From: Macrostomum lignano
Taxonomy: Eukaryota
Reading direction: 5' to 3'
NCBI GenBank assembly: GCA_002269645.1
Contig: NIVC01000619.1
Location: forward strand, 144,601-208,600
Length of the DNA stretch: 64,000 nt
Under the pieces are notes generated by a model. It was not told the DNA's origin and searched no databases. It was given only the letters and a program-made list of their open reading frames with translations. A program made the position numbers and the translations under genes. This document shows, piece after piece, positions 3,997 through 56,988 of the stretch (the first letter of the stretch is position 1; every line of letters starts with the position of its first letter).

Positions 3997-4860
3997 AGGC
4001 TGCATTATGCATCTATCCACTAGGCTGGCTGCATTATGCATCTATCCACAAGGCTGTATTATGCATCTATCCACTAGGCTGCATTATGCATCTATCCACA
4101 AGGCTGCATTACGCATCTATCCACTAGGCTGGCTGCATTATGCATCTATCCGCAAGGCTGCATTATGCATCCATCCACAAGGCTGCATTATGCATCTATC
4201 CACTAGGCTGGCTGCATTATGCATCTATCCGCAAGGCTGTATTATGCATCTATCCACAAGGCTGCATTATGCATCTATCCACAAGGCTGCATTACGCATC
4301 TATCCACTAGGCTGGCTGCATTATGCATCTATCCGCAAGGCTGCATTATGCATCCATCCACAAGGCTGCATTATGCATCTATCCACTAGGCTGGCTGCAT
4401 TATGCATCTATCCGCAAGGCTGCATTATGCATCCATCCACAAGGCTGCATTATGCAGCTATCCACAAGGCTGCATTATGCATCTATCCACAAGGCTGCAT
4501 TATGCATCTATCCACTAGGCTGGCTGCATTATGCATCTATCCGCAAGGCTGTATTATGCATCTATCCACAAGGCTGCATTATGCATCTATCCACAAGGCT
4601 GCATTACGCATCTATCCACTAGGCTGGCTGCATTATGCATCTATCCGCAAGGCTGCATTATGCATCCATCCACAAGGCTGCATTATGCATCTATCCACTA
4701 GGCTGGCTGCATTATGCATCTATCCGCAAGGCTGCATTATGCATCCATCCACAAGGCTGCATTATGCAGCTATCCACAAGGCTGCATTATGCATCTATCC
4801 ACAAGGCTGCATTATGCATCTATCCACAAGTCTGCATTATGCATCTATCCACTATATCCA
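3997..4860. repeat. Composite 25/29-bp minisatellite with higher-order structure
   Basis: AGGCTGCATTATGCATCTATCCACA alternating with CTAGGCTGGCTGCATTATGCATCTATCC variants. Confidence 0.9.
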
Positions 4861-6165: not shown

Positions 6166-7043
<878 letters not shown>

Positions 7044-7542: not shown

Positions 7543-7953
7543 ATGTACTCAGACAGGACAGAGGTTGCAAAAGTACTCAGACAGGACAGAGGTTGCAAAA
7601 GTACTCAGACAGGACAGAGGTTGCATAAGTACTCAGACAGGACAGAGGTTGCAAAAGTACTCAGACAGGACAGAGGTTGCATAAGTACTCAGACAGGACA
7701 GAGGTTGCAAAAGTCTCAGACAGGACAGAGGTTGCATAAGTACTCAGACAGGACAGAGGTTGCATAAGTACTCAGACAGGACAGAGGTTGCATAAGTACC
7801 CAGACAGGACAGAGGTTGAAAAAGTACACAGGCAGAACAAAGACAGGACAAAGGTTGCTAAAGTACACAGACAAGACACAGGTTGCAAAAGTACACAGAC
7901 AGGACACAGGTTGCAAAAGTACACAGACAGGACAGAGGTTGCAAAAGTACACA
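7543..7953. repeat. 28-bp minisatellite, ~15 copies
   Basis: Unit GTACTCAGACAGGACAGAGGTTGCATAA/AAAA. Confidence 0.9.
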
Positions 7954-7994
7954 GACCACAGCTCGCCCTACAGAAGCCCCATCCCAAGCAAGTG

Positions 7995-9478: not shown

Positions 9479-9661
9479 CTAACCATGAAAATGAACGTGG
9501 AAGCCCTTCTTCCTCAGCTTCGGGAACTGCTCCTCTGACATCTTGGAATCGTCGGAGTCGGACGGATCCTCCTTCGACTCGCTTTCGGCCTTGGCCTCTG
9601 AGGGTTCGACAACGACCAGGGCTGCGAGCACCAGAAGTCCGAGAACCAGTTGCCACTTCAT
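9479..9661 (-). CDS. P1: secreted His-rich prepropeptide (60 aa; mature GFHVHFH-G)
   Basis: MKWQLVLGLLVLAALVVVEPSEA signal-like segment, acidic spacer, RKK, GFHVHFHG, stop; one of 11 near-identical intact copies. Confidence 0.9.
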   Translation of the reverse strand: MKWQLVLGLLVLAALVVVEPSEAKAESESKEDPSDSDDSKMSEEQFPKLRKKGFHVHFHG

Positions 9662-11036
<1,375 letters not shown>

Positions 11037-12570
11037 CTACACAGCCCTTGTGCCCTGATCGGCTTTGACAAATATAACAACCAGTACCATCTAACTAGGC
11101 AACCCCATGCAACTATAATATTTGTGTTGTTGAGCTTTTTAAATTTGCAAGTTGTGATGTTGAAGACTGGTAGATAAATGTGCGACGTACAGATAATAAT
11201 TTGTCGCTTTCATGACGCATCGTGCGTCAAAGTTGCAGACTGAACTCTAAATTCTGACTTGAATATGATGATGTAATAATGATGCGATGAAGATAATCTT
11301 AAATTCAACGTAAATGTGTTAACTTAGAGAGATACTTGTTCAGCAGTTTTTGGGTATACCTTCATTTTCCGGGTTTTTGAGTTTTACCGGGTACGATAAG
11401 TCAATAACTTGTGCATAATATCTCTGAGATTGTGAGTGCACTATTTACTTGGAAGGTGTGTTGTGTCCTTGGGCGGTCCGGCTGATGCTCCTAGATGAGA
11501 AGCTGAGCTTTCCGTGCTTTTTGAAAGATGACCGCTTTTAGCGGCTTTACTGAGTTTGCGCTGGGTGAACCGAGATGAGTAGGTAGCTGGTAAATGGAAA
11601 TCATTGAAGGCATCGTGCCGTAGACTTTGAATTTTCACAACTAGCTAAATGGAAGGCATGAGACCAAAACTTTGGTACCCTGCCATTGGGACCCACTTGG
11701 GATTCGGGAACCCTAGGCCGATGAGAGTGTTCAGCGATAGCGAGAGCAGTGCCGCTGGGTCAGATATTGACCATCAGGTCCTACTGTGACTGAATTCTAG
11801 CTCGTAACCTCTCTTCTAGCAAACCGGTGTATCAACGCAAAGGGGATAGAAGGCGGAAACGGGCGATACAATTGCCCTCGGCCTGTCCAGCGCTTGGTAG
11901 AGTCGAGTCACAGGCCAAAGGAAAGGCAAAGGCCGATACCAAAGTCGATGCAGTGCTTGGCCTTCTGCAAGCGGCGGTTCGGCGACCGTACCGACGTCTG
12001 TGCCATAGACTTTTAATTCCACAAAGGTCGAAATGAAAGATATGAGCCCAAAAATTTGGTACCCTGCCATTGGGACCTACTTGGAAGTTAGGGTAGAGCA
12101 TGTTAGACGAAGAGAGTCGGCTAACTGAAAAGTACGAGGCTGAATTGCAAAACATATTTGGAAGATGGAAATCCGAAACGCCCATAATGTTTTGAGCGCA
12201 TTTCAAGTAGTTTCAAATTGGCACAAATGAATAATATCCATATTTGATTGAATTTCTTCATTCAATGAATTTCTTTCTTCATGCATCAAAACTTCTCTGA
12301 TTACTTTAGTGCAAATTGTCTGCATGATCACTGGCAACTGGAAAAAAATTAACAAAGCTCAACACCACAAATATTATTGTTGCATTAAGTGTCTAATTAG
12401 CTTCTGCTTGTTGTTATATTTGGTAAAATTGTTCAGCGAATAAGGGCTTGTGTTAATTTCAGTTTACCATTCAGAATTGGGCGGTTTCAAATCAAAGTTT
12501 AAAGTTCGGTCAGCTGTGACTTGTCTTAATCTTCCGATCGATGAAGCGACTTCGATGTGCGATGTGGCTC
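11037..12570 (-). repeat. Inverted duplicate of the P5-P6 spacer (~32420-33950)
   Basis: Identical 65-aa ORF at 11441-11638(-) and 33342-33539(+); flanks are reverse complements. Confidence 0.9.
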
Positions 12571-12572
12571 AT

Positions 12573-12755
12573 CTAACCGTGAAAATGAACGTGGAAGCCC
12601 TTCTTCCTCAGCTTCGGGAACTGCTCCTCCGACAGCTTGGAATCGTCCGAGTCGGACGGATCCTCCTTCGACTCACTTTCGGCCTTGGCCTCCGAGGGCT
12701 GGGCGACGGCCAGGGTTGCAAGCACCAGAAGTCCGAGAACCAGTTGCCACTTCAT
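12573..12755 (-). CDS. P2: His-rich prepropeptide (GFHVHFH-G)
   Basis: Intact 60-aa ORF, signal variant VLATLAVAQ. Confidence 0.9.
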   Translation of the reverse strand: MKWQLVLGLLVLATLAVAQPSEAKAESESKEDPSDSDDSKLSEEQFPKLRKKGFHVHFHG

Positions 12756-13711: not shown

Positions 13712-14080
<369 letters not shown>

Positions 14081-16646: not shown

Positions 16647-17271
16647 TGGCTGACTAATTAACTAGTTAGAAAATACTATATGAACCTCCTATGAGTTGTC
16701 TGTATGTATGTATATGGGTATGCGATTGATTTCAGAAAAAGTGGCTCAACCGATTTTTTTCAAACTTGCACCATTCGATCAGAAATTTTCCTGGGACGGT
16801 ACATGCATCTTGGCTAAGAAATTGCTCAATGTTAAAGGGATTAAATATTCGAAAAACATGCTTTTTTGCAAAGGTCAAGCAAAATTTTCAACTTGAAATG
16901 CATTGTAAGAATGCTAGAGAAAAACTGACTGACTGAATTACAATTCTGATAAAGATTGCATCACAACCAGTTGAAAACAGTGCCAAAGAAATGCACACAC
17001 GACTTGATTTAAATTGCGTAACCATATTGCTAACTTAAATTGAGACTGGTACTGGCTGACTGAGAAATTGATTATGTCATAAATTTTTACTCTAACCGAC
17101 TTGCTGTAAGAATTGAATTATAAGGGCCACAATTCATGTTCTCCAATTGAAAAGAGATAGCCTAGATGCAAACAGACTGGACTGCTAATGTAGCGACCTG
17201 GGTTCGAATCTTATTAGTGCAAAATAATTTTTAAATTAAAACACCTTAAAAACACAAAATGCAAAACATAA

Positions 17272-18090
17272 AAGAGCCACCATGTCAAACATTAGAGAGC
17301 CACCATGTCGAACATTAAAGAGCCACCATGTCAAAAATATACATGACTCCATGTCGAACATTCAAGAGCCACCATGTCAAACATATACATGACTCCATGT
17401 CAAACATTGAAGAGACACCATGTCGAACATAAAAAAGTCACCATGCGAAACATAAAGGAGCCACTATGTCAAATATTCAAGAGCCACCATGGCAAACACA
17501 TACATGACTCCATGTCGAACATTCAAGAGCCCCCCTGTAAAACATATACATGACTCCATGTCGAACATTCAAGAGCCACCATGTCAAACATATACGTGAC
17601 TCCATGTCAAACATTGAAGAGGCCCCATGTCGAACATTAAAGAGCCACCATGTCGAACATAAAAGAGCCATCATTTAAAACATATACATGACTCCATGTC
17701 AAACATTGAAGCGACACCATGTCGAACATAAAAGAGCCACCATGTCAAACATAAAAGAGACACCATGTCAAACATTAAAGAGACACCATGTCAAACATTA
17801 AAGAGCCACCATGTCAAACATTAAAGAGCCACCATGTCAAACATAACAGAGACACACCATTTCAAACGTAAAAGGGCCACCATGTCAAACATTAAAGTGC
17901 TACCATGTCAAACATAGAAGAGCCACCATGTCAAACATTAAAGAGCCACCATGTCAAACATAAAAGAGACACCATGTCAAACATTAAAGAGCCACCATGT
18001 CAAACATTAAAGAGCCACCATGTCAAACATAAAAGAGACACCATTTTAAATGTAAAAAGAAGCTTCATGCCAAACATAAAGGAGCCACTA
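17272..18090. repeat. 22-23-bp minisatellite
   Basis: Unit AAGAGCCACCATGTCAAACATT with variants. Confidence 0.9.
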
Positions 18091-19727: not shown

Positions 19728-22700
19728 GGTGGTGGTGGGGCACCCCACTACCGGGCGCGCCTGGCGCGCCTCCCAACGCTGCCACCTTCTCGCGGTGGGA
19801 CCGACTGGGCGCCCGCCCAGCAAAGTGCAGCAACACCCCTGACCCTGGGAAGAGTGCAGAGCGCGCTTTCGGCGCGTCATTACCACGTCGGCATTCTTTT
19901 ACCAAGCTGGCCCTGGCTCCCCAGCCCACCTCGGCCAGCTTCTCATCCGGGCTGGAGACATCGAACAAAACCCGGGACCAGCCTTCCCGTGCGGAGCCTG
20001 CAATCAGAATGTCACCCGCAAAGACTACTCCACCCGCTGCTCCTCTTGCCTTCGCTGGTGGCACCGCCGTTGCAGCAACCTTAGCATAGCCGAAATCAAC
20101 ATCGGTCGTGACCGGAGACTTTGGCGGTGCGCAAACTGCCGTCAGCCGACGGCACAGACGGACAGCCCAACGCCACTGCCTGACCCGCCTAGCCCGCCAA
20201 ACCCGCCTCCCCCGGTCCACCGTCGGACTGAAAACATGGCCACGTATCCGACCGACGGGACTCCGCACGCTAAAAACGCTAAAAACAAAGACAATGCAAA
20301 GTTCCGCATTATACAACTCAATGCAGCCGGCCTCAGAGCTCGACGCCTCGAACTCCTCCGATTCCTCGAAGAACACCAAGCGGACATTGCCTGCATCCAG
20401 GAATCGAATCTGTCGCCCACGTCTCAGGTCCCGCGCCTCCCCGGTTGGCAACTGGCAGGCCGTAGGGACCGCGCTATAAACCGCGACGGTGACGCCACTG
20501 CCACTCCCCACGGAGGGGTCTGTTTTCTTGTCAAGGAAGGCGTGGACTTCGCTGAGTACCGTCTGCCGCAGATAGACGTGACCCGCATTGCATCTGAAGG
20601 CTCGGCCATCTCGCTCCACGATAAACGGTTAACACGCCCAATTCACATCATCAACCTCTACCTCCCGCCGGTTCGAGCCGCCGACGGGCGCCCTGACGGC
20701 TTCGACCCGGACTGGCTCCCGACCGGCCCGGACGTGCTCATCCTCGGAGACATCAACGCGCACCACGGCATGTGGGAGGATAACTGCGACTCTGAAGACC
20801 AGCGAGGCTCCGTTTTCGAAGACTGGGCTACCACCAACGACTACGTGGCCCTCAACGACGGCGGCCCAACCAGAGTCAACGCCAGAGGCATCACCAGCAG
20901 CTTCGACGTCTCCTTCGTCCCTGCCAGCTGGCAGGACAAGCTGGAATGGAACACCGGCAAACATATCGGATCTGATCACCTGCCCATTATCATTGACGTT
21001 ATTAACCAAAACCCGCTCCCTGTGAAAAACGACAGGAAAAAGAGGCACACTCGCTTGGCTTATCACAAAGCAGACTGGGACAAATACCACCTTATCATCA
21101 GCGAGCGCCTTAAAAACTGGACCGCCAGACCACCAAAGACTGCCACCGGAGCCGCCAACAAGCTCACCGACGCGATCATGGACGCGGCCCGCAAAGCGAT
21201 CCCGCAGGGATCCCGCCGCGCCCCTATCGCCTGGTGGTGCCCAGAAGCAGAAGCAGCGTGCGCGGCCAGGCGCCAGGCGCTAGAAGACCTCCGAGCCAAC
21301 CCCAACGACGACTAACTCGCCCAGGCGTTCCAGGAGGCGGCAGTACACGCCACCGCCACCATCCGCAACGCAAAGGAAGCCCTGTGGCGCGACTTCATCA
21401 GCGACAACTCCAGCGAGCTCAAGTCGGCTGACCTTTGACGCATCATACGCGTCCTCGACGGCCGCACCGCGGCCTCCCGCCCATCAGGGGCGATCCAAAA
21501 CCCACAAGGCCGCTCCACCACCTCCGACCGCCAGAAAGCCGATCTTTTCTGTCAAGAGTACGCCAATGTCGCCAAAATCCCGAAAGACAAATCTGCCGAC
21601 AAAGACATCCGAAACGAAGCCAGAAGAGCTGTGCGGGACACCTGCAGCTGCCAAAATCACTGGACGGGCCTTTGCGCCGACTTCCCGATGGAAGCTCTGA
21701 CCAGAGCCATCAGAGGAGTCCCCAGCAGATCGGCACCGGGCATCGACGGCGTTTCGAACTTAATGCTAAAAAATCTGCCAACTCAAGGCCTGGAACTGCT
21801 GCTGCTCGCCATCAACATCTCCTGGCGCTCCGCTGAAATCCCGGCAATGTGGCGTCTAGGCGATATTCGCCCGATCCCCAAGCCCGGGAAAGATCACAGC
21901 ATCACTGCGAGTTTCCGCGCTATCTGCCTTCTCTCTTGCACTGCCAAAATCGCTGAACGGCTCGTTAACGAACGCCTCACCTTTCATCTGGAAGAGAATA
22001 AACTGCTAAATCCAGCCCAAGCCGGCTTCCGCCGGAACCGCTCCACCGAGGAGCAGATCACAGCTGTCACCCAATACATCTTCGACGGCTTCCAAGCGCA
22101 GAAACCAGCGAAGCGGACCGCCCTACTCTTAGCTGATTTCTCCAGAGCATACGAGCGAGTGTGGCGTAAAGCCCAAATCGCCAAGCTCCACAGGAAAGGG
22201 ACGCCCACGTGCATGAACCGGTGGATTAACAACTTCATCAGCGATCGCCGTGCCCTCGTCACCTGGGACGGGGCCCGCAGTCGCGTCCGGATCTTCACAG
22301 AGGGCCTACCGCAAGGATCCGTTCTCGCCCCGACGCTCTGGGACGTTTACATCGACCACCTGCTCGACGACGCCCCCGAAAACGTCCTGGCGGTCGGATA
22401 CGCCGACGACACCACCTTCGGCGCCCAAGGCCACAACCTCAGGGAGTGCGAGTCGAAACTGCAGAGAGCGGCCGATTGGCTTGTTGCCTGGTCCCAAACC
22501 TGGAAGGTGGACCTCAACAAGTCCAAATGGGTCGTTTCCTTCTTCTCCCTCGACCCCCGCGAGGTCAACGGCAAAGCGAGACCCAGCATCATGCTCGGCG
22601 ACGTCCAGGCCCCGTACGAATCCCACCCCAGACTCCTGGGCGTGCACCTCGACTCCCAGCTCACGTTCCGGCACCATGCGTCGGTCCAAAAACAAAACCT

Positions 22701-24175
22701 CCAAAAGAGGACCAACGCTCTCCGCTGCCTCGCCGGGCGTGACTGGGGCCAGGACCCAGGGCTCCTGTCGCAACTCCACAGAACCTACGCCGAGTCGGCT
22801 GCTCTCCACGGCGCTGCAGCCTGGTTAAACTTCGCGTCGGACGCCTGCAGACAACTGGTGGAATCTGCTCACAACGAGGCTGCCCGTGTCATCTCAGGGT
22901 GCTGCAAATCTACGCCGACTGCCGCGCTCCTTATCGAAGCCGGACTCCAACCCCTGGCACACAGTGCGGCGGCCGCGGCAGCGACGTTCCTGGACAAAAC
23001 GAGCGTCAAGCCACCCCGCTCCGCAACATAGCCGACAGAGAAGTCACTCCTCGCATCCGCGCTCTCGGCGGAAACGGCAACTTCCGCAGATGCTGGCACA
23101 GGTGTGCTAGAGAGATGACCCACAGAGTCGGACTGGCCGAGCGCCAAATCGAAACCGACAACGAGCTGGTGCCAACGTGGTCTTCCTTGACTAGTTTTCA
23201 CATCCAAGACTCCCTCATTACTAGGTGCTCCCGAGACGACCCATCGCATGTCCGCAGGACCGCGGCGCTGGAGACCCTAGCTCCCCCCCGCAGACCTGAA
23301 ACTCTGGACGGACGGCTCAGCATCAGGAGGCACTACCAACGGCGGAGCAGGAGCCGTACTCTACACCCGGTTCGCCGACGCGCATTCTCAGAGCACCGGC
23401 GGGGAGCCTGACCTCGTCCTTCCGAGCGGAAGAATGCGCGCTTAGGCTCGGTCTTCAGGCAGCGTTTGACGATCTGCCGTGGCCGGGAAACCGTGAGCTG
23501 CGCTGCGCGACTGACTCCCAGGCCCTGCTCCGCTGCCTCAAAGGCGGCCCCATCCCGCGGCTTTCCCCGTGCTGCCGCGACATCCTGCGTATTTTGGGAC
23601 GCCTACCGCCAGGCCACCACGTGACCCTGCAATGGGTCCCGGGCCACTGCGACCTTCGTCGCAACGATCTCGCCGACGCCACTGCCCGCGCTGCTGCCAC
23701 TCTTGATCAGACCAACGCACCTCTGGATCACCGCAGCGCGCGCTCTGCCATCCTGGAAACGGCCCAAAACGACTTCATCCAATTGTACAAGGCAAACAAG
23801 CACTGCAGCACCCACCGCACCTGCACCAACGGACGACGACCCAAACAGAAAACTTCCATGAACCGTAAGGACAGAGTCCTGCTAGCCCAGCTACGCAATG
23901 GCCACTGCCCGATACTCCGACAGTACCGGCACCGCATCAGGCTGGAACTGGAGGCCACCTGCCCAGCCTGCGGGGAGGCCCCGGAGGACCTCAAGCATCT
24001 GCTTCTGGAATGCCGCACCACAACCGAGACCAGACGACAAATCTTGGGCGAGAACCCGACGCTGGCCATCCTCCACGACGACGGCCCGCGCGCACTGCAC
24101 TTTCTCCATGCGGTAGGGGCGCAAACCCGCCCCCCCGGATATTAACCCGGCCGGGAACTAACAACAACAACAACA
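19728..24175 (+). mobile_element. Apparently full-length Ingi/I-group non-LTR retrotransposon (2A, PHD-like finger, APE, RT, RNase H, C-terminal Zn finger), inactivated
   Basis: 13-bp TSD ACGAACAGATGAT (19715-27 and 24176-88); (AAC)n tail; APE motifs (QLNAAG, CIQE, GDINAH, SDHLP); RT (GLPQGSVL, YADD); RNase H (WTDGS, TDSQ, WVPGH); CPAC...HLLLEC; in-frame stops at 21313 and 21436 and frameshifts near 23000-23400. Confidence 0.93.
19924..19980 (+). other. 2A-like StopGo ribosome-skipping motif (AHLGQLLIRAGDIEQNPG|P)
   Basis: Matches D(V/I)ExNPGP; in frame with the downstream finger and APE, with no stop from 19843 to 21312. Confidence 0.9.
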
Positions 24176-24509
24176 ACGAACAGATGATCGACGAACTAGA
24201 AGAGATTGAATTTTTATATAACCAGTTTATCGCGGAACAGCACTCGTCTGGCGACAACACTGGCTTAATCAATCCAATTAGTCGATGTAGCCCGGCCGAG
24301 TCTCTGCGTTATTCAGACGACAATATTCTAGAGGAGTCGAGTTTCTGGAGCGGCGCTCGTTCTGTCGCGTGTCAAACTGACAACATCAGACCGGGCTCTA
24401 CATCAGGTCGCATCCGTAGTTGGTCTGTATAATATTAGTTATATAACAACATTGTTAAAAAGACATATTAAATCTATATAACTACAACATAGTGAGATAA
24501 AAGGTCATA

Positions 24510-25085
24510 TCACCAATTAACAAGGTCACACCATCAGTCAACAATGTCACATCACCAGTCTATACAGTCACATCACCAGTCAGCATGGTCACATCACCAG
24601 TCATCATGGCCACATCACCAGTCCATATGGTCACATCAACAGTCAACATTGTCACATCACCAATCAACATAGTCACATCACCAGTCCATAAGGTCACAAC
24701 ACTAGCCAACATGGTCACATCACCAGTCACCATGGTCACATCACCAGTCAATCAGGTCACATCACCAGTCAATCAGGTCACAACAACAGTCAAGTATGTC
24801 ACACCAGCAGTCACTTTGATCACATCACCAATCTTCATGGTCACAACACCAGTCAATCGGGTAATATCACAACTCAATCGGAGTCACAACACCAGTCAAC
24901 CAGGTCACATCACTAGTCAACATGGTCACAACACCAGTCAACCAGGTCACAACACCAGTCAACCAGGTCACATCTCCAGTCGCGTTGGTCACATCACCAG
25001 TCACCCAGGTCACATCACCAGTCAAACACGGTCACATCGCCAGTCAACACGGTCACATCAGGCGACATCAGGTCACATCAGACAT
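24510..25085. repeat. 21-bp minisatellite
   Basis: Unit ACATCACCAGTCAACATGGTC with variants. Confidence 0.9.
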
Positions 25086-27094
25086 ACAGGCGACCTTCGG
25101 GACCTTCAACGGAGTGCCACCACGCGGCCCTGACGAGCGGGCACCCCAACATCGTGATTTTTCTATCAAGGCACCAAACCAGGCATGTTTGGATATTATG
25201 CAATGCTTTTCCACCATGTTAAATTGGAGAGTTGCAGATTTAACTGGCAGCTGAAAGTCTATAATTATAATCCCGGCATAAAACACACGCGTCTGCGTCC
25301 CACAATGAAATCAATACATCCCCGTAGGCCCGATATATAAGTAATCACAGAACTGTCAGAGCAGCCATCGCGAAGCCCTCAGGCTCGGCAATCAAGAAAG
25401 AATAACCGCCCGGAAGAAAGGGAGGCACAGCGATGCGATGGATTGCACTGTTACAAAAACCAGCACATCTTCAGTTCTTCAGTCTTTCCATCGCAAATTT
25501 CCGGAATCATACTAAAATCGTATTCATAAACCGGTTGCGTTGTTACACAATGGCAGTCACTGAGGCGCAACTGTTGCACAGATATCTCACAGAAAATTGA
25601 GCCACAGACAACGACGCCAAGGGCTTCATTTCCTGGTGCGAGCGCTACAGAAATTGCAACAGCAAAGCTGGCAGACGTGATGCCTGTATGTCTACAGGTC
25701 AGCCTAGAGGGTCGCCATCGTCCATTTCATCCACCGATTATGTCTACTGACAGAAGAGGGTTCTTCCATTTCAATTTTGGGAACGCAGCCGTCTCTGAGA
25801 TGCCGATCGGGTGCTTTTGTTGAAGGTCCCGACGGTCGCCGCCGTCCAGACGTTGATGAAGGGGACCCTGGTGCCTGGGATGCTGAGAGCAAAAGCCTCT
25901 ACGACAGATGGACCCAGATTATTGAGCCAATATGGATTCACCATAAAGGTTGATACAGTGTAGTGTTGGTTGTCCTTGCCACCAGTGTCTTCGACAAGAA
26001 TCGTTAAATATCTCGACGATGCTGACGTCGTATGACTTTGAAAGTTAGTTCGTCGGAAAAGGCGGAAAATTTTGATCCATATGGTTTACTTTTACGAAAA
26101 TCGGTAATTCGGTTTGCGAGCTAGCGTCGTCTGCGTCTTACAAAATGAAATGGGTCGTGTGTATTTTTAATACACCCCGAGGTCTTTCCCCATGGGGAAA
26201 AATTGCGTGGTCTTTCTACTGTTAAGAGACTTGTACTCAACACTCTTGATCCCTGTAGTGAGCAAACTCCTTGAGGTGCTGCCAGATGGACTTCGTATTA
26301 GAAGAGTCTCTGTCTCTCAGCAGGATCGGCGAACGATAAAGAATATACACTGACACGAAGTTTGGAAGCAACCAGTGGAGTAGCTGAAAATTGGCGTGAG
26401 TCTGCCAGAAATTTAATAGTCAAGTGTGTCCAATCTGATCGGGTTCAAGCTGTTTAAGAGACTAGGAGGCAGCAAGCGGTGATTGTCAACCAGAGAATAG
26501 CATCACATTGGAAATAGTCGCTACACGAGAAAACTTTAAGGGCTTGTGCTAGGCATATTAATTCTCGATTGACTAGAAAGCGGGGTTGACGTACGGGCTT
26601 TAGCGAAAAGTGGTAATGACTTGCAATGTACGATTTAACAACTCAGAATACGGAAAGTTAAAAAAGTGGCGCGACACGAAGACGGCAGGTGGAATAGGCG
26701 ATCTTGAGTGAGAAATACTTTTTTCTTTAAACCATATCTCCCTTCTTGGCATAAGCACATGCCTACAAAAACAAAGAGCCATCTAAAAAAGCTCCTAACG
26801 TTTGAAACATTAAAATTAGAAGCGAGTGCCTTTCATGAACAAAATTGAATCGCTAGGATATAATATTTCCAAACAAATCACAGAAAATAAAATTAGGATT
26901 GAATGATCGGTGAAGTAAACGGAGTGCATGGCGGTGCGGTGGGTATACTTGCACTGAGAAAACCGTAGAGCTGTAACTCGTTTCATTGCTCAGGCGTCAA
27001 CAAGCAAATAAACGCTACATGATATTCACTTAAAGCAACGCCTGTCTCTGCTCACGTGAAAGCATTCACCTCAAACTACACCGCTCGACGGAAC

Positions 27095-27125
27095 GGAAAC
27101 ACGTGCCGATCCGATGCGTATAAAT
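27095..27125 (+). promoter_or_regulatory. Core promoter of the peptide genes (representative: P3): GGAAACACGTG E-box followed by TATAAAT, 94 nt upstream of the ATG
   Basis: GGAAACACGTG is present at the same position upstream of all 12 intact copies; the TATA element reads TATAAA, CATAAA or CATATA. Confidence 0.7.
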
Positions 27126-27212
27126 TCGCCGACTGCCGACTACTCAACCCAACAAGCTCAGACTCGACTCAATCTACACACAACTCGAAGAATCGACTCG
27201 ACTCAAGCAACC

Positions 27213-27395
27213 ATGAAGTGGCAACTGGTTCTCGGACTTCTGCTGTTCGCAGCCCTGGTCGTGGTCGAGCCCTCGGAGGCCAAGGCCGAAAGCGAGTCGA
27301 AGGAGGATCCGTCCGACTCGGACGATTCCAAGCTGTCGGAGGAGCAGTTCCCGAAGCTGAGGAAGAAGGGCTTCCACGTTCATTTTCATGGTTAG
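27213..27395 (+). CDS. P3: His-rich prepropeptide (GFHVHFH-G)
   Basis: Intact 60-aa ORF from the conserved ATGAAGTGG. Confidence 0.9.
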   Translation: MKWQLVLGLLLFAALVVVEPSEAKAESESKEDPSDSDDSKLSEEQFPKLRKKGFHVHFHG

Positions 27396-28059
27396 ATGAG
27401 CCACATCGCACATCGAAGTCGCTTCATCGATCGGAAGATTGACAACTCACAGCTGACCGGACTTCGAACTTTGATTTGAAACCCCCCAATTCTGAATGGT
27501 AAACTGAAATTAACACAAGCCTTTATTCGCTGAGCAGTTTTACCAAATATAACAACAAGCAGAAGCTAATTAGACACTTAATGCAACAATAATATTTGTG
27601 GTGTTGAGCTTTGTAAATTTCTTCAAGTTGCCAGTCGTCATGTGGAGGACTTTCAGATAAAAGTTTTTGTATTAAAGTAGTCAGAAAGTGTTGATGCGAT
27701 AAGGTACTCATTCGGCACATATGGATTATATATATTCGTTTTTGCCAAACTTTATTATTTGAAATAAGTTCACAACATAATCGGCGATTATGCGATTACG
27801 CGTATAAAATAACATTTCCTAACTTTTCCGTTTACTTTGTGAATTATTGTGGCGATTCTTAACTCGTCACAAACAAGTGACTAAGCAGCTAACTAACTGT
27901 AGAGTTAACAGAATTTTCTCTTCTTGTTGTGAAAAATCGGTTATCAAATGTGCGAGCTGATTTAGGAAACGTGGAGCCAATTCGATCCATAGAACTATAG
28001 TGGAGCTCGTACCCATTTTTTGAGAAATCTCCAAGAGAAAGATGTGACAACTTGATGAT

Positions 28060-29806: not shown

Positions 29807-29989
29807 CTAACCATGAAAATGAACGTGGAAGCCCTTCTTCCTTAGCTTCGGGAACTGCTCCTCCGACAGCTTGGAATCATCCGAGTCGGACGGATCCTCC
29901 TTCGACTCGCTTTCGGCTTTGGCCTCCGAGGGCTCGACAACGACCAGGGCTGCGAAAACCAGAAGTCCGAGAACCAGTTGCCACTTCAT
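29807..29989 (-). CDS. P4: His-rich prepropeptide (GFHVHFH-G)
   Basis: Intact 60-aa ORF. Confidence 0.9.
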   Translation of the reverse strand: MKWQLVLGLLVFAALVVVEPSEAKAESESKEDPSDSDDSKLSEEQFPKLRKKGFHVHFHG

Positions 29990-32233: not shown

Positions 32234-32416
32234 ATGAAGTGGCAACTGGTTCTCGGACTTCTGGTGCTCGCAGCCCTGGTCGTTGTCGAGCCCTCGGAGG
32301 CCAAGGCCGAAAGCGAGTCGAAGGAGGATCCGTCCGACTCCGACGATTCCAAGCTGTCGGAGGAGCAGTTCCCGAAACTGAGGAAGAAGGGCTTCCACGT
32401 TCATTTTCATGGTTAG
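32234..32416 (+). CDS. P5: His-rich prepropeptide (GFHVHFH-G)
   Basis: Intact 60-aa ORF. Confidence 0.9.
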   Translation: MKWQLVLGLLVLAALVVVEPSEAKAESESKEDPSDSDDSKLSEEQFPKLRKKGFHVHFHG

Positions 32417-34059: not shown

Positions 34060-34242
34060 CTAACCATGAAAATGAACGTGGAAGCCCTTCTTCCTCAGCT
34101 TCGGGAACTGCTCCTCCGACAGCTTGGAATCGTCCGAGTCGGACGGATCCTCCTTCGACTCACTTTCGGCCTTGGCCTCTGAGGGTTCGACAACGACCAG
34201 GGCTGCGAGCACCAGAAGTCCGAGAACCAGTTGCCACTTCAT
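34060..34242 (-). CDS. P6: His-rich prepropeptide (GFHVHFH-G)
   Basis: Intact 60-aa ORF. Confidence 0.9.
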   Translation of the reverse strand: MKWQLVLGLLVLAALVVVEPSEAKAESESKEDPSDSDDSKLSEEQFPKLRKKGFHVHFHG

Positions 34243-37281: not shown

Positions 37282-37473
37282 ATGAAGTGGCAACTGGTTC
37301 TCGGACTTCTGCTGTTCGCAGCCCTGGCCGTCGCCGAGCCTTCCCAGGAGGAGAACGACAAGGGCCAAAGTGATTCGAAGGATGATCGGACCGACATGGA
37401 CGTTTCCGACCTGTCGGATGAGCAGTTCCCGAAGCTCAGGAAGAAATTCCACCTTCATTTACCTGGTAAATAA
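37282..37473 (+). CDS. P7: divergent paralog, 63-aa prepropeptide (mature FHLHLP-GK)
   Basis: Same signal peptide and promoter, diverged acidic spacer, ...QFPKLRKK FHLHLPGK*. Confidence 0.88.
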   Translation: MKWQLVLGLLLFAALAVAEPSQEENDKGQSDSKDDRTDMDVSDLSDEQFPKLRKKFHLHLPGK

Positions 37474-38228
37474 GCAACATCGTACATCGAAATCGCTTCA
37501 AGAATCGGAAGATTATGACAACTCACAGCTGACCGGACTTTGATCTCTGACTCGGAACCACCCAATTCTGAATGGTAAACTTGAAATCTACTCGGCTCTT
37601 ATTCGCTGATCAGTTTTATTATCTGACAAATACAACAGCATCGTCTAATTAGGCACCCAGTACAACGATTAGATTTTTGTTGTTAAGCTGCGTAAATTTC
37701 TTTGTAAGTCGGAAGTCATAATGGGGAGAAATTTAAAATACATTTAATTTCAATTAATGATCTTAAAATATGACAGAAAAATAGCTGTTTCGAAGGAGCG
37801 ACTTCTCCAAAGGCGGCTGCTGCTCGCAAAGACTGGCCGCTTGTCCGCCCGGCGTGAATTTCCCCAAATTGACCTGCGTTCTACAGGTTCGCATGTTTCA
37901 TAGTGTGCTGGTGGGTGGCTTGTAAAAGTAGCTGCTCTTAAATTAAGAGTAGTTTCGGAGTCAAATTGTGGTGGATGAGACCTATATGCGCGTCAATATG
38001 GTCAGCCAATGTCGTTTTTTCTGTGCCTTGTTGCACTGTACGGATATTTTCGCCCGCATTAAATAGAAGCATTTACTGCTCGTTATTCCAAATATTACAA
38101 TAGACATTTGGATTCAAAACATTCAGCACCAGGTGTATTTGTTAATACGAACTTAGCTAAAGAACACCAAAAAGTAAATGAACAAAAAAGAAACAATCAA
38201 TAAAAACTTAACTACACTCTTAACTAAC

Positions 38229-39458
<1,230 letters not shown>

Positions 39459-39923
39459 GGCATAAAGATACAGCAGATAGATATATACTTTTCTATCTGA
39501 GTTCTTAGCTGAGTTTCGAGTGCCTAGAGTTAATTTTTGCACTAGACAATTGGGCAAATGAATTTTGATACAGAGTTCCGTCAGCCTCAATAAAGTGACT
39601 TCGATATACGATTTGTCATGAAAGCGACTAAAAAGTATCTGAATGAAGATGCATTTACAAGTCCTTTACTTCACGGCTCGCAACTTGAAGATATTTACAA
39701 AGCCCAACAAAACAAACAGTATAGTTTCTTTGCGAGCCTATTTATTTGGTACTTGTTGGTATATTTAATAAAACTCGCCAGTGAATAAACACTGAGTACA
39801 CTACACCTCAACCATTTAGAAATTGGGGGGGGGGTTAGAGTCAGAGTTCAGAGTCCGGTCGGTGGGAGTTGTGAGTGCGAGTCCCTTAATCTTCGATAAA
39901 GCGACTTCGATGTACGATTTTGT

Positions 39924-40114
39924 TTATTTACCAGGTAAATGAAAGTGGAACTTCTTCTTGAGCTTCGGGAACTGCTCATCCGGCTTCCCGGAAGCGTCCA
40001 TCTCGGAGGATCATCCTTCGACTCACGTTCGCCCTTGTCGTCCTCCTCCTGGGAAGGCTCGGCGACGGTCAGGGCTGCGAACAGCAGAAGTCCAAGGGCG
40101 AGCTGCCACTTTAT
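39924..40114 (-). pseudogene. P8: pseudogene of the P7-type paralog (would encode FHFHLP-GK)
   Basis: ATG changed to ATA; 1-nt deletion (191 nt vs 192 nt in P7) after KDD; TATA/E-box segment deleted upstream. Confidence 0.85.
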
Positions 40115-41224: not shown

Positions 41225-41407
41225 ATGAAGTGGCAACTGGTTCTCGGACTTCTATTGTTCGCAGCTCTGGCCGTCGCCCAGCCCTCGGAGGCCAAAGCCG
41301 AAAGTGAGTCGAAGGAGGATCCGTCCGACTCGGACGATTCCAAGCTGTCGGAGGAGCAGTTCCCGAAGCTGAGGAAGAAGGGCTTCCACGTTCATTTTCA
41401 TGGTTAG
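41225..41407 (+). CDS. P9: His-rich prepropeptide (GFHVHFH-G)
   Basis: Intact 60-aa ORF. Confidence 0.9.
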   Translation: MKWQLVLGLLLFAALAVAQPSEAKAESESKEDPSDSDDSKLSEEQFPKLRKKGFHVHFHG

Positions 41408-44976: not shown

Positions 44977-45159
44977 CTAACCATGAAAATGAACGTGGAA
45001 GCCCTTCTTCCTCAGCTTCGGGAACTGCTCCTCCGACAGCTTGGAATCGTCCGAGTCGGACGGATCCTCCTTCGACTCGCTTTCGGCCTTGGCCTCCGAG
45101 GGCTCGACAACGACCAGGGCTGCGAAAAGCAGAAGTCCGAGAACCAGTTGCCACTTCAT
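44977..45159 (-). CDS. P10: His-rich prepropeptide (GFHVHFH-G)
   Basis: Intact 60-aa ORF. Confidence 0.9.
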   Translation of the reverse strand: MKWQLVLGLLLFAALVVVEPSEAKAESESKEDPSDSDDSKLSEEQFPKLRKKGFHVHFHG

Positions 45160-46509
45160 GATTGCTTGAGTCGAGTCGATTCTTAGAGTTGTGTGTAGAT
45201 TGAGTCGAGTCTGAGCTTGTTGTCTTGAGCAGTCGGCAGCTGCAAATTTATATGCATCGGATCGGCACGTGTTTCCGGTCCGTCGAGTGGTGTTGTTTGA
45301 GCTGAATGCTTTCGCGTGAGCAGAGAAAGGCGTTGCTTTAACCGAATATCATGTAGCGTTTGTTTGCTTGTTGACACCCGAACAGTCAAACAAGTACCGC
45401 TCAAGCATTTTCTTAGAGCAGGACACTGCAGGTATTCTCGTATTCGTTTCACTAAATATGCATGAGACTTTTTATGCGGAAAAACTGTCGTACTTCATCT
45501 AGGAGAAGAATCCCGGTAGAGACAGTGCATGTAAAAAGAAGAAAGAGAACAATATTCGCAAGATTAAGGAGTAAAAGCGTTGTATGTTGAGGGGGTTGTT
45601 AACTTAAATGTTTCACTCCCCCTCTTCTTATGCATATTCTTCTTTTTGAGTCTTGAAGTTTCTTCTTCTTGAGTTTTTAAGTTTCTTCTGCCTGTTAGGC
45701 TCCATTAATTGGTGAAATAAGACCGTTTGCATCTAATGACCCGATCAGCACAGTGATTAGAACTGTGATGACCGGAAACACAATTTTTAGGTAGTTTAGC
45801 GATTCCTAGTTTTATTTAATCGGAATGAGGCGAAGCATACTTTTGTGACTATGTACTTTTTTTCTTGAATGGATTATAATATTTTTTTGACTTGAATGTC
45901 TTTTGCCTGGGACTTTTCAAATGCTAGTGCTTAAGTGGTAGCTTTTTTAAGTGGGCACCTTTGTTGTGTCATGATATTACGATATATCACATGGTAAAGA
46001 TATAAGTTTTAATCAATTTAACAAGTTTTCATACTAGGCAAGTGCCGTATAAGTCCGTCTTTCAGCAACTCACTCAATTAGTTTACTCAGTACATGTTCG
46101 AAACTGTTTAGCACAAATTTGTTCAATCTCATTTAACTGGAAAGCCCAGAAGAGTCGCGATGAGTTTAAAATTTTTAGAAAGGGTGAAAAATGCTGTCGA
46201 AATAAACACGGCGGTAGCAAGTCGGCAGTTGTCGATTTGCACGTTGGTAGATTAAACGAGCCGAAGTCAGAATATAAGCTTGCGAATGGCATGCTTCCAC
46301 GCATTTCCAGCCTGTGTGTGGATTCTCGTCATTTTATGCTTTGTTCGATCAAACCAAATTGGCTACTGAAATCTAAGCAGTTCGAAATCTAACCAGAAAA
46401 GTTAGAAACTACTATTAGAAACTGCAGAAATCGACACTCAGTGATCGAAACAACAATCTGTAAATATTCCCATGTCGTGGAATTTATTCTCCACTGCTGA
46501 CAAATTCAG

Positions 46510-46572
46510 ATGTCGGAGGAGCAGTTCCCGAAGCTGAGGAAGAAGGGCTTCCACGTTCATTTTCATGGTTAG
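46510..46572 (+). pseudogene. P11: 5'-deleted copy (MSEEQFPKLRKKGFHVHFHG*); promoter and signal peptide lost
   Basis: The upstream module is joined directly to AGATGTCGGAGGAG; the 3' flank matches P12. Confidence 0.85.
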
Positions 46573-50063: not shown

Positions 50064-50246
50064 ATGAAGTGGCAACTGGTTCTCGGACTTCTGGTGCTCG
50101 CAGCCCTGGTCGTTGTCGAGCCCTCGGAGGCCAAGGCCGAAAGTGAGTCAAAGGAAGATCCGTCCGACTCGGACGATTCCAAGATGTCGGAGGAGCAGTT
50201 CCCGAAGCTGAGGAAGAAGGGCTTCCACGTTCATTTTCATGGTTAG
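50064..50246 (+). CDS. P12: His-rich prepropeptide (GFHVHFH-G)
   Basis: Intact 60-aa ORF, KM spacer variant. Confidence 0.9.
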   Translation: MKWQLVLGLLVLAALVVVEPSEAKAESESKEDPSDSDDSKMSEEQFPKLRKKGFHVHFHG

Positions 50247-50593: not shown

Positions 50594-51245
<652 letters not shown>

Positions 51246-52152: not shown

Positions 52153-52335
52153 CTAACCATGAAAATGAACGTGGAAGCCCTTCTTCCTCAGCTTCGGGAA
52201 CTGCTCCTCCGACAGCTTGGAATCGTCCGAGTCGGACGGATCCTCCTTCGACTCACTTTCGGCTTTGGCCTCCGAGGGCTCGACAACGACCAGGGCTGCG
52301 AGCACAAGAAGTCCGAGAACCAGTTGCCACTTCAT
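52153..52335 (-). CDS. P13: His-rich prepropeptide (GFHVHFH-G)
   Basis: Intact 60-aa ORF. Confidence 0.9.
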   Translation of the reverse strand: MKWQLVLGLLVLAALVVVEPSEAKAESESKEDPSDSDDSKLSEEQFPKLRKKGFHVHFHG

Positions 52336-56805: not shown

Positions 56806-56988
56806 ATGAAGTGGCAACTGGTTCTCGGACTTCTGCTATTCGCAGCCCTGGCCGTCGCCCAGCCCTCGGAGGCCAAGGCCGAAAGTGAGTCGAAGGAGGA
56901 TCCATCCGACTCGGACGATTCCAAGCTGTCGGAGGAGCAGTTCCCGAAGCTGAGGAAGAAGGGCTTCCACGTTCATTTTCATGGTTAG
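56806..56988 (+). CDS. P14: His-rich prepropeptide (GFHVHFH-G)
   Basis: Intact 60-aa ORF. Confidence 0.9.
   Translation: MKWQLVLGLLLFAALAVAQPSEAKAESESKEDPSDSDDSKLSEEQFPKLRKKGFHVHFHG

Follow-up and report, generated by a model that had tools for sequence, protein, structure and literature searches.

A gene-amplified Macrostomum family of small, putatively secreted precursors and its histidine-rich C-terminal peptide: architecture, ATCUN motif and candidate role

The focal gene and its copies

The window analysed here is the last 64 kb of the Macrostomum lignano contig NIVC01000619.1, and the focal ORF within it, MKWQLVLGLLLFAALVVVEPSEAKAESESKEDPSDSDDSKLSEEQFPKLRKKGFHVHFHG (27213-27395, plus strand), has the residues G-F-H-V-H-F-H-G as its C-terminal end. 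In the DNA, AGG AAG AAG encodes R-K-K at 27360-27368 and GGC TTC CAC GTT CAT TTT CAT GGT TAG encodes G-F-H-V-H-F-H-G-stop at 27369-27395, which bears out the original prediction of a basic R-K-K site followed by G-F-H and two further histidines. A signal peptide, called by inspection rather than by a dedicated predictor, is suggested by a basic n-region (MKW), a hydrophobic core of ~15 residues, and small residues at positions -3/-1 of the possible cuts (SEA-K or AVA-Q). Upstream of the gene lies a TATA box, TATAAATT, at about 27119-27126 (-94..-87), with an E-box CACGTG ~20 nt further upstream and the starts of annotated transcripts ~35-40 nt downstream of it. The region 3' of the stop codon contains a conserved AAATATAACAAC block, and the duplication extends to about +450 relative to the ATG. 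What a bacterial ORF-finder reports around the locus, antisense and out-of-frame ORFs that overlap the gene included, was disregarded because the DNA is eukaryotic.

Within the window we identified 11 intact genes with the exact GFHVHFHG tail; the other relatives there are an FHLHLP-GK variant, a pseudogene, and a fragment (Table 1). Change is concentrated in the tail: in the variant gene at 37282-37473 the pre-pro part is amino-acid-identical, with seven synonymous differences, yet the tail is FHLHLPGK instead of GFHVHFHG (Fisher p 0.007). Gly-Lys, with which this tail ends, is a classic amidation signal.

Table 1. Features of the focal gene and related copies in the 64-kb window
Feature	Position	Strand	Remark
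Paralogue RKK-GFHVHFHG	9479..9661	-	L41M variant
Paralogue RKK-GFHVHFHG	12573..12755	-	
Promoter and 5'UTR of focal gene	27000..27212	+	conserved
Focal gene	27213..27395	+	intronless 60-codon CDS plus stop; predicted 60-aa secreted precursor
Focal signal peptide (predicted)	~27213-27281	+	residues 1-19/23
Focal acidic pro-piece	up to 27359	+	between signal peptide and R-K-K
Focal R-K-K site	27360-27368	+	putative cleavage site
Focal tail GFHVHFH	27369-27389	+	directly 3' of R-K-K
Focal Gly	27390-27392	+	putative amidation donor; last residue before stop
Focal stop TAG	27393-27395	+	
3'UTR region	27396..27660	+	partly conserved among copies (identity 0.5-0.9)
Paralogue RKK-GFHVHFHG	29807..29989	-	convergent with focal gene
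Paralogue RKK-GFHVHFHG	32234..32416	+	
Paralogue RKK-GFHVHFHG	34060..34242	-	
Divergent paralogue RKK-FHLHLP-GK	37282..37473	+	His at 2 and 4, without ATCUN
FH-type pseudogene	39924..40114	-	ATG to ATA start plus frameshift; residual tail KKK-FHFHLPGK
Paralogue RKK-GFHVHFHG	41225..41407	+	
Paralogue	44977..45159	-	protein identical to focal
Truncated 3' fragment	46507..46572	+	ends ...MSEEQFPKLRKKGFHVHFHG*; without signal peptide
Paralogue RKK-GFHVHFHG	50064..50246	+	L41M variant
Paralogue RKK-GFHVHFHG	52153..52335	-	
Paralogue RKK-GFHVHFHG	56806..56988	+	

The focal ORF is a real gene and not a chance reading frame, because it exists in 11 intact copies, its coding sequence is better conserved than its flanks, its codon changes show a synonymous excess, all copies keep the TATA box, and the public gene models of family members rest on RNA-seq. 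Identity between copies reaches 0.93-0.98 in the coding sequence versus ~0.8 in the 5' flank and 0.5-0.7 in the 3' flank, and among the variable codons of residues 20-60 there are 14 with synonymous changes only and one with a replacement, the tail being invariant. Copies on other contigs, with a different pro-piece (EEHFSMLKKK-GFHVHFHG), have the same GFHVHFHG tail, with synonymous changes only (CAC/CAT and AAG/AAA). The coding region, including the GFHVHFH tail, is under purifying selection.

A Macrostomum family with hypervariable tails

By sequence comparison, the focal gene is a member of a large, amplified family seen here only in Macrostomum. Apart from one Logan contig and one spurious match, an exhaustive phmmer search and two profile searches, run against 5.8e9 and 1.84e9 sequences, yielded M. 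lignano proteins only, and a Pfam search found no credible family for the focal protein or its relatives. A 'Lock_Gag1-like' match at threshold (27.1 bits) maps to the acidic helix that is duplicated in P0015 and was judged spurious, and the DUF4576 and GRP matches to the focal protein are far under the cut-off. Among the phmmer matches, P0011, a cystatin-like repeat protein of 1022 aa, aligns only through an acidic low-complexity stretch and was not accepted as a relative; the UniRef name 'SERPIN domain-containing protein' is a mis-annotation of P0009, a family member of 73 aa. Arrays of the family are present on several contigs and comprise dozens of copies in tandem and inverted arrangement.

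More than 20 paralogues share one architecture, in which a signal peptide is followed by an acidic pro-piece, a basic site and a tiny C-terminal peptide; the precursor logic of the original prediction extends to these relatives. Every aligned member has [REK]KK or KK before the tail, with KK invariant. The tails themselves are hypervariable, 6-10 residues long, and nearly all end in G or GK (for example, FVRVRVRL-G, IFRVRVHI-G, and FIHIHF-G), and the residue before the Gly may be H, P, F, I, L, or V. Identity decreases from 0.82 in the signal peptide to 0.49 in the pro-piece and 0.22 in the tail. The more acidic residues a pro-piece has, the more basic ones its tail tends to carry (rho 0.55, p 0.03), a weak correlation computed without phylogenetic correction. 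The acidic pro-piece is itself strongly constrained and may be more than a spacer.

Despite their variability, the tails keep a common register of alternating hydrophobic and basic residues, with basic residues at positions 3/5/7(/9) in 12 of the 15 short tails and hydrophobic residues at positions 1, 2, 4, 6, and 8. Most tails are Arg-rich, as in FVRVRVRL and IFRVRVRI, and the Arg-type tails have net charges of +4 to +15. Arg and His interchange at homologous codons by single CGT/CAT steps, and mixed tails with a lone His at position 5, 7, or 9 form a continuum from all-Arg to all-His. At the other end of the size range, the family tails grade into AMP-like, Arg-rich forms of 18-33 residues, and two members (P0027 and P0028) carry long Arg-rich and Pro/Arg-rich tails resembling classical antimicrobial peptides (AMPs).

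The ATCUN motif within the tail register

The original prediction proposed that the mature peptide begins with an ATCUN motif, which is defined as NH2-Xaa-Xaa-His with a residue other than Pro at position 2. G-F-H fits these formal rules, residue 2 of the predicted mature peptide being Phe, which leaves the backbone amide N-H of residues 2 and 3 available; the free Gly N-terminus is deduced from cleavage after R-K-K and is not visible in the DNA, and G1-F2-H3 adjoins KK, so that His occupies position 3 only if cleavage falls exactly after KK. The invariance of KK in the family speaks for a cut there without proving it. With such an N-terminus, the peptide should take up Cu(II)/Ni(II) in vitro through Gly-Phe-His, like any ATCUN peptide. 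Conservation of the motif among close relatives would be expected if it were the selected function, but the sister tails do not show it: ATCUN is found only in GFHVHFH and FIHIHF, FHLHLP and FHFHLP carry His2, and all Arg-type and mixed tails are without His3. The variant gene at 37282-37473 ends in RKK-FHLHLPGK on the plus strand and would yield either His2 or, if cut after RK, K-F-H, as had been anticipated.

In a peptide with three His among seven residues, His stands at position 3 in 3/7 of the permutations, and the family register places basic residues at positions 3, 5, and 7; an X-X-His start is therefore statistically unremarkable. The His3 codon is homologous to that of Arg3 in the paralogues and one CGT/CAT step away from it; an Arg-to-His change there thus suffices to produce the ATCUN motif. 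To judge from these comparisons, selection has most likely not acted on the motif, which would be a side effect of Arg-to-His substitutions within a register that existed before; at most, it may have been co-opted.

Natural AMPs with ATCUN motifs include piscidins 1/3 (FFH/FIH), histatin 5 (DSH), ixosin, and myxinidin. They have in common with GFHVHFH the NH2-Xaa-Xaa-His start, the non-Pro residue at position 2, and more His downstream, and the paralogue tail FIHIHF resembles the start of piscidin-3, FIHHIF. However, these AMPs have lengths of 12-24 residues, with the motif added to a helical membrane-active body, whereas the whole Macrostomum peptide would consist of seven residues; in further contrast, the Macrostomum motif is not kept in sister genes, and its presence is explained by Arg-to-His changes within the register.

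Candidate role and alternative explanations

Since nearly all of the otherwise hypervariable tails end in G or GK, the terminal Gly of the focal precursor is almost certainly an amidation donor, and the predicted product is the 7-mer GFHVHFH-NH2 and not GFHVHFHG with the Gly retained. In the processing route that we infer, the signal peptide would be removed first, a prohormone-convertase-type enzyme would cut after the invariant Lys-Lys, and the C-terminal Gly would be consumed by peptidylglycine alpha-amidating monooxygenase, leaving the heptapeptide GFHVHFH-NH2. M. lignano possesses a homologue of PC2 as well as peptides that are amidated, such as GYIRFamide (PMC4490696). The anionic pro-piece would probably neutralise or escort the peptide, which may represent the all-His branch of an ultrashort amphipathic beta-strand peptide family, and the use of His for Arg would provide a switchable charge and, in addition, metal-binding ability. 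The calculated charge of GFHVHFH, about +1 at pH 7.4-8, rises to about +3.6 when the pH is lowered to 5.5, and the peptide is amphipathic as a beta-strand (hydrophobic moment 0.60 versus 0.18 as a helix). With such very short peptides, each shuffle test of beta-periodicity is weak on its own (p 0.01-0.2), and the beta-strand argument therefore rests on the recurrence of the same register in many distinct tails.

We consider a secreted host-defence effector (antimicrobial, otherwise membrane-active, or toxin-like) the most likely role of GFHVHFH-NH2 and its amplified Macrostomum family, with a probability of about 0.5. The antimicrobial or toxin-like function suggested originally agrees with the family design, namely the decrease of identity from signal peptide to pro-piece to tail, the rise of pro-piece acidity with tail basicity, and the existence of an AMP-like distant member; against it counts that the window peptide is barely cationic (~+1) at seawater or physiological pH. 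To our knowledge, a length of seven residues is also shorter than that of almost all natural AMPs. The distant member, Mlig024774, shares its signal peptide and acidic pro-piece with the family; it was AMP-like, being positive in 100% of predictors, in the survey of Irvine et al. (2023), where 'same genome' was the only ground for dropping it and where a member with the shared N-terminus was marked signal-peptide positive. The designed 8-mer IRIKIRIK, which alternates in the same way, is bactericidal over a broad range. A literature search for the peptide strings GFHVHFH, FHVHFH, and FHLHLP gave no match, nor did nine family gene IDs in the paper texts or in the supplements of the M. lignano transcriptome and expression papers searched.

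The closest parallels in precursor organisation are the preprodermaseptin superfamily of hylid frogs and the Hydra arminins. AMP precursors of both groups combine a conserved signal peptide, an acidic pro-piece, and a basic processing site with a single variable, cationic, often Gly-amidated C-terminal peptide, they are encoded by multigene tandem families, and the acidity of the pro-piece tracks the charge of the tail. No sequence homology to them was found, and their peptides are helices, whereas the Macrostomum tails are far shorter (6-10 residues) and are predicted to be alternating beta-strand amphiphiles, with His as the only basic residue in the window tail. At the level of the peptide, the designed beta-sheet antimicrobial IRIKIRIK-NH2 (IK8L) shares its strict hydrophobic/cationic alternation and C-terminal amide with the near-analogues FVRVRVRL, IFRVRVRI, and FVRLRVRI; it differs in being synthetic, the natural tails begin with two hydrophobic residues, and the window variant has His in place of every Arg/Lys.

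A serious rival, though one that we regard as doubtful, is that the genes encode neuropeptides or peptide hormones, that is, amidated peptides signalling at receptors, maybe as a lineage-specific expansion akin in kind to the flatworm I/L-amides. A signal peptide, an acidic spacer, a dibasic KK site, and a C-terminal G/GK amidation signal are textbook prohormone grammar and are equally a hallmark of neuropeptide precursors, which counts against the defence role; 6-10 residues is a typical neuropeptide size, and both PC2 and amidated neuropeptides are present in M. lignano. Moreover, some Arg-type tails would end in R-[VI]-R-[IL]-amide, and the resulting ...VRI/VRL-amide recalls GFVRIamide and RLamide, which are likewise short amidated peptides from small precursors (npp genes). 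The window tails, however, would end in His-amide or Pro-amide and not in Ile/Leu-amide. Schistosome I/L-amides are 'highly conserved between species', and the mature peptide is usually the conserved part of a neuropeptide precursor, whereas in Macrostomum the tail is the least conserved part (0.22 versus 0.82 for the signal peptide) and even its C-terminal residue varies. A single peptide per precursor combined with dozens of arrayed gene copies is a pattern typical of effector genes, the family grades into the long Arg-rich, AMP-like tails, and no homology to a precursor from outside Macrostomum was detected.

We hold it improbable that the peptide was selected as a dedicated metallopeptide, as the original prediction implied, with an ATCUN Cu(II)/Ni(II) site and extra His that would let it act as an antimicrobial generating ROS in dependence on copper, or else scavenge or buffer metals. 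His makes up three of the seven residues, G-F-H fits the ATCUN rules if the cut falls after KK, GFHVHFH, with 11 copies and a tail under purifying selection, is more amplified than any other variant in the region, and His3 recurs in another paralogue of the His type, FIHIHF. NH2-Xaa-His is itself a copper site in coordination chemistry, and the sister peptide FHLHLP would still offer one. Against this, FHLHLP and FHFHLP are without ATCUN through the deletion of a single Gly codon in an otherwise identical precursor, single His residues at 5, 7, or 9 mark the continuum of mixed tails, His3 is homologous to Arg3, and the motif is expected by chance from composition and register. Another improbable reading is a self-assembling material or storage peptide, which would be charged and soluble in acidic granules and at ~pH 8 would form cross-beta, possibly Zn/Cu-bridged assemblies that might be used in mucus, adhesive, egg-shell, or other extracellular matrix, or might serve as a surface for catalysis. 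This is suggested by the strict F-H-V-H-F-H alternation with its beta-type hydrophobic moment, by a high gene dosage that suits a bulk product, by the calculated fall in charge from +3.6 (pH 5.5) to about +1 (pH 7.4), and by a close parallel with the designed 'catalytic amyloid' peptides Ac-IHIHIQI-NH2, Ac-IHVHLQI-NH2, and Ac-LHLHLRL-NH2, which form Zn-binding amyloid at pH 8 with His facing outward. These peptides also have seven residues, a C-terminal amide, and a hydrophobic-His-hydrophobic-His-hydrophobic core (IHVHL in the designed peptide versus FHVHF and FHLHL in Macrostomum). However, the reading is pure analogy with designed peptides that are N-acetylated, have no free amine or ATCUN, and contain only two His, and the Arg-type majority of the family would remain highly charged and soluble. 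In addition, the known adhesive proteins of M. lignano are large proteins. It is a similarly long shot that GFHVHFH-NH2, together with FHLHLP-NH2 and FIHIHF-NH2, is a natural, gene-amplified counterpart of the catalytic amyloid heptapeptides, stored protonated and soluble in acidic granules, perhaps escorted by the conserved acidic pro-piece, and, once secreted into seawater of ~pH 8, losing its charge and self-assembling into amphipathic cross-beta material, where the His face and the free N-terminal ATCUN site would take up Cu/Zn to give a redox or hydrolytic surface of antimicrobial or structural use. Finally, a seminal-fluid or otherwise sexually selected peptide, a fast-evolving, lineage-restricted, and tandemly amplified gland product passed at mating, appears very unlikely; it would account for the lineage restriction of the family, the rapid diversification of its tails, and its amplification in tandem arrays, which are common features of reproduction-related genes of Macrostomum. 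It describes a site and not a mechanism of action and could hold together with an antimicrobial mechanism.

For motif-based annotation, the lesson is that a family-wide register can by itself produce an ATCUN match where cleavage is predicted, without that match being the selected function. The antimicrobial-peptide repertoire of flatworms 'has not been described', according to a 2023 survey that filtered out the sole member of this family that it detected. If the peptides are defence effectors, they would be among the first flatworm AMP families and would show in nature the minimal (hydrophobic-Arg)n alternation at which peptide engineering arrived independently. The all-Arg, mixed, and all-His tails on one precursor chassis would then constitute a natural Arg-to-His series, in effect an experiment on pH- or metal-switchable activity, and since M. 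lignano is tractable to transgenesis and RNAi, the question is directly testable.

Focal gene and its predicted product

Reading of the codons at 27360-27395 (AGG AAG AAG GGC TTC CAC GTT CAT TTT CAT GGT TAG) gives R-K-K-G-F-H-V-H-F-H-G-stop, so that the coordinates and residues of the GFHVHFHG end were correctly placed in the original prediction, as was the variant copy ending RKK-FHLHLPGK. The 8-mer product assumed there needs revision: nearly every tail of the family, the part after KK, ends in G or GK whatever its remaining sequence, a signature of an amidation donor whose Lys, where present, would be trimmed by carboxypeptidase. Thus, the most likely product of the window genes is the 7-mer GFHVHFH-NH2, with both cleavage and amidation predicted from sequence. 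A PC2 homologue and amidated neuropeptides are known from M. lignano (PMC4490696), indicating that the processing machinery exists.

In 12 of the 15 short tails, positions 3, 5, 7 (and 9) are basic and the remaining ones hydrophobic, and His3/5/7 of GFHVHFH fall exactly into the Arg3/5/7 slots of its paralogues. At homologous tail codons, Arg and His are separated by single CGT/CAT steps, as seen in FVRVHVRF (TTC GTC CGT GTT CAT GTT AGG TTC), FVRLRVRI (TTC GTC CGT CTT CGT GTC AGG ATT) and FIHIHF (TTC ATC CAT ATT CAT TTC).

A family of precursors with hypervariable tails

The family members share a signal peptide M[KR]WQ[LIF][AV]LGLLL[CF]AAL…, an acidic pro-piece, an invariant KK and a short tail. 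In searches covering 5.8 billion and 1.84 billion proteins, matches came only from M. lignano, apart from one Logan contig and one spurious match, and a Pfam search with the family proteins gave no matching family. The UniRef name of the 73-aa member A0A1I8G6Q8, 'SERPIN domain-containing protein', is an evident mis-annotation. The 929-nt Logan contig (run SRR31628392), the sole member found outside the NCBI M. lignano assembly, encodes the Pro/Arg-rich tail FLRVRLPRVRMPRVRLPRVRLPRLRVRFRWSKK.

Tail types in the family (a slash precedes the predicted amidation donor)
Type	Tails
All-His	GFHVHFH/G, FHLHLP/GK, FIHIHF/G
Mixed Arg/His	FVRVHVRF/G, IFRVHVRF/G, IFRVRVHI/G, IFRVRARIHI/G
All-Arg	IFRVRVRI/G, FVRLRVRI/G, FVRVRVRL/G, FVRVRARIRL/G, FIRARVRVRL/G, WLRVRARVRI/G
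Long Arg-rich	FRIRIRWGRVARNVLRLL/GK, WLLRRIRIRWRRVLRVASRVYRIYRYLPI/GK, FLRVRLPRVRMPRVRLPRVRLPRLRVRFRWSKK

A second, more diverse array lies at 19-49 kb of NIVC01000619.1, about 100 kb upstream of the window array, with tails FVRLRVRI, IFRVRVRI, FVRVHVRF, FIHIHF (twice) and WLRVRARVRI. Proteins encoded in the window place it on this contig as the final 64 kb out of 208.6 kb, and contig coordinates exceed window positions by 144,600. Since the window ends with the contig, the His-type array may run on past it. On other contigs, GFHVHFHG is kept despite altered pro-piece ends (EEHFSMLKKK, EEQFSKLEKK), and the tail changes are synonymous only. Mosaic genes joining a GFHVHFH-type pre-pro region to an FHLHLPGK tail occur on other contigs (L001 19594 (+), L001 2778 (-) and L006 6313 (+)); the Mlig_3_7 assembly (GCA_002269645.1) contains redundant haplotype or homeologue copies, and cross-contig copy numbers are upper bounds. 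One FHLHLP gene has a pre-pro region identical in amino acids to that of a window GFHVHFH gene; the pair differs at 7 synonymous sites across 156 nt of pre-pro, whereas the 21 nt of tail hold 5 differences and, in addition, two codon indels (Fisher p = 0.007). The mosaics suggest that the subtypes have undergone recombination or gene conversion with each other, or that changes concentrate in the tail.

Copies, constraint and repeats in the window

The focal ORF is a genuine gene and has been amplified. Using tblastn and blastn, we identified in the window 11 intact copies ending RKKGFHVHFHG-stop, which are distinct loci of one contig, and a single divergent intact copy ending FHLHLPGK-stop. 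A pseudogene and a 3' fragment indicate that the array has undergone birth-and-death turnover. Neighbouring copies mostly lie in opposite orientations, and the unit conserved among them is ~700 bp long. Compared pairwise, the copies are 0.93-0.98 identical in the CDS, with lower values for the 200 bp upstream (~0.8) and for the 3'UTR (0.5-0.7). Among the 11 copies, as non-independent paralogues, the variable codons of residues 20-60 comprise 14 synonymous-only and one replacement (L41M), which argues that tail and acidic spacer are both under purifying selection; six of the seven replacements sit in the signal-peptide hydrophobic core. The spacer, with L41M as its sole replacement despite 13 synonymous sites, is constrained as strongly as the peptide. 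It contains S-x-E/D motifs, and may have its own function, e.g., chaperoning, sorting or phosphorylation.

All copies carry a [T/C]ATAAATT (TATA) box at -94..-87, and all 11 also retain a CACGTG E-box that precedes it by ~20 nt. Public gene models, built by genome-guided RNA-seq assembly, start ~35-40 nt downstream of the TATA box. The promoter as a whole (~ -215..-1) is conserved in all 11 copies and has further invariant blocks (AAGCAAA…ACGCTACATGATATTC and GCAACGCCTGTCTCTGCTC), and the 3'UTR has a conserved AAATATAACAAC block near +330. These conserved stretches may serve as regulatory and poly(A) elements.

The window also holds mobile elements and satellite and microsatellite arrays. Its LINE-type element stands out in the composition profile as a block of high GC content (0.60-0.63). 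Long ORFs such as 38178-39500 are spurious products of microsatellites, and the 'VTSPV…' repeat ORFs (24585-25254) are an artefact of the 21-bp tandem repeat.

Features of the window
Feature	Position	Strand	Remarks
Focal ORF, 60 codons	27213-27395	+	MKWQLVLGLLLFAALVVVEPSEAKAESESKEDPSDSDDSKLSEEQFPKLRKKGFHVHFHG, closed by RKKGFHVHFHG-stop
Conserved promoter (example)	27000-27212
Acidic spacer, residues 20-49 (example)	27270-27359		PSEAKAESESKEDPSDSDDSKLSEEQFPKL
Divergent intact copy	37282-37473		Tail FHLHLPGK
Pseudogene, family member	39924-40114	-	ATG to ATA, frameshift; unique tail FHFHLPGK
3' fragment, family member	46507-46572	+	Only …MSEEQFPKLRKKGFHVHFHG-stop left
LINE-type retroelement	20236-23031	+	Inside cluster; endonuclease and reverse transcriptase ORFs
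Its endonuclease domain	20236-21315	+	Exo_endo_phos_2
Its reverse transcriptase	21631-23031	+	RVT_1
piggyBac-like transposase remnant	54249-54884	-	DDE_Tnp_1_7, C-terminal half only; between two peptide genes
Microsatellite (CTAT)~220	6166-7043		Very long, nearly perfect, between gene copies
Microsatellite (TCTA)~307	38229-39457		Very long, nearly perfect, between gene copies
Microsatellite (AGAT)~162	50594-51244		Very long, nearly perfect, between gene copies
Two (CTA)~120-140 arrays	10619-11040; 13712-14079		Very long, nearly perfect, between gene copies
21-bp tandem repeat	24503-25060		26 copies
Satellite, 43 bp	1-345
Satellite, 25 bp	3997-4852
Satellite, 28 bp	7545-7956
Satellite, 23 bp	17264-18088

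Proposed defence or effector role and the alternatives

Antimicrobial-peptide (AMP) gene families such as the frog preprodermaseptins and Hydra arminins combine a conserved pre-pro region with a hypervariable cationic C-terminal peptide in tandem arrays. The present family likewise has a conserved pre-pro region, a hypervariable C-terminal peptide and tandem arrays, with identity falling from 0.82 in the signal peptide to 0.49 in the pro-piece and 0.22 in the tail. The more basic residues a tail has, the more acidic residues its pro-piece tends to contain (n = 16; Spearman 0.55, p = 0.03, without phylogenetic correction). According to Irvine et al. (2023), the flatworm AMP repertoire is not yet described; their S5 file places BOX15_Mlig024774g1/g2 in AMP-like group 142, where 100% of the predictors scored positive and the only reason for removal was "Same genome". 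Both carry the family's MKWQLALGLLLC… signal peptide and acidic pro-piece, with tail FRWRKAIRIAGKVAKAVL. This discarded supplementary row for a distant member is the sole literature trace of the family, and no paper retrieved by literature search contains the peptide strings or family gene IDs. IRIKIRIK, a designed 8-mer of alternating residues, has broad bactericidal activity. Based on the AMP-like design, this listing and the IRIKIRIK activity, we interpret the window genes as the His-type branch of a family of putative defence or effector peptides.

A neuropeptide is a rather unlikely alternative, although the precursor grammar is identical, the peptide size fits and the …VRI/VRL-amide ends of Arg-type paralogues recall I/L-amides: whereas neuropeptide families conserve the mature peptide, this family has its lowest conservation in the hypervariable tail, and the gene copy number and AMP-like long members also argue against it. 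The original proposal of an ATCUN (amino-terminal Xaa-Xaa-His Cu(II)/Ni(II)-binding) metallopeptide was correct as a pattern match, but this is probably not the biological point. The register and Arg/His steps make the pattern automatic wherever position 3 is His, and it is not conserved, since FHLHLP lacks the Gly codon and has His at 2 and 4, and mixed tails have a single His at 5, 7 or 9; a dedicated metallopeptide is accordingly improbable. In ATCUN chemistry, Cu(II) is coordinated via NH2/N-/N-/Im, and GFHVHFH-NH2 should, as predicted from this chemistry, bind Cu(II) in vitro in the same way.

The FHVHF and FHLHL cores strikingly resemble those of Ac-IHVHLQI-, Ac-IHIHIQI- and Ac-LHLHLRL-amide, which at pH 8 assemble into Zn-binding amyloid whose His residues face outward; a self-assembling material would rest on this analogy, and we regard it as no more probable than a dedicated metallopeptide. 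A reproductive secretion is more doubtful still, and would speak to the place of action, not the mechanism.

Under the defence or effector reading, the calculated net charge of GFHVHFH-NH2 (about +1 at pH 7.4, +3.6 at pH 5.5) and its near-perfect beta-strand amphiphilicity (calculated moment 0.60 at 180° versus 0.18 at 100°) imply that the predicted activity would be switchable by pH or metal. The family is new, and its conserved-prepro/hypervariable-tail kind of effector is already known; new within this kind are the ultrashort beta-strand design with alternating Arg/His and the 11-fold amplified all-His heptapeptide with its predicted amide. This family context is worth pursuit in a tractable model organism.
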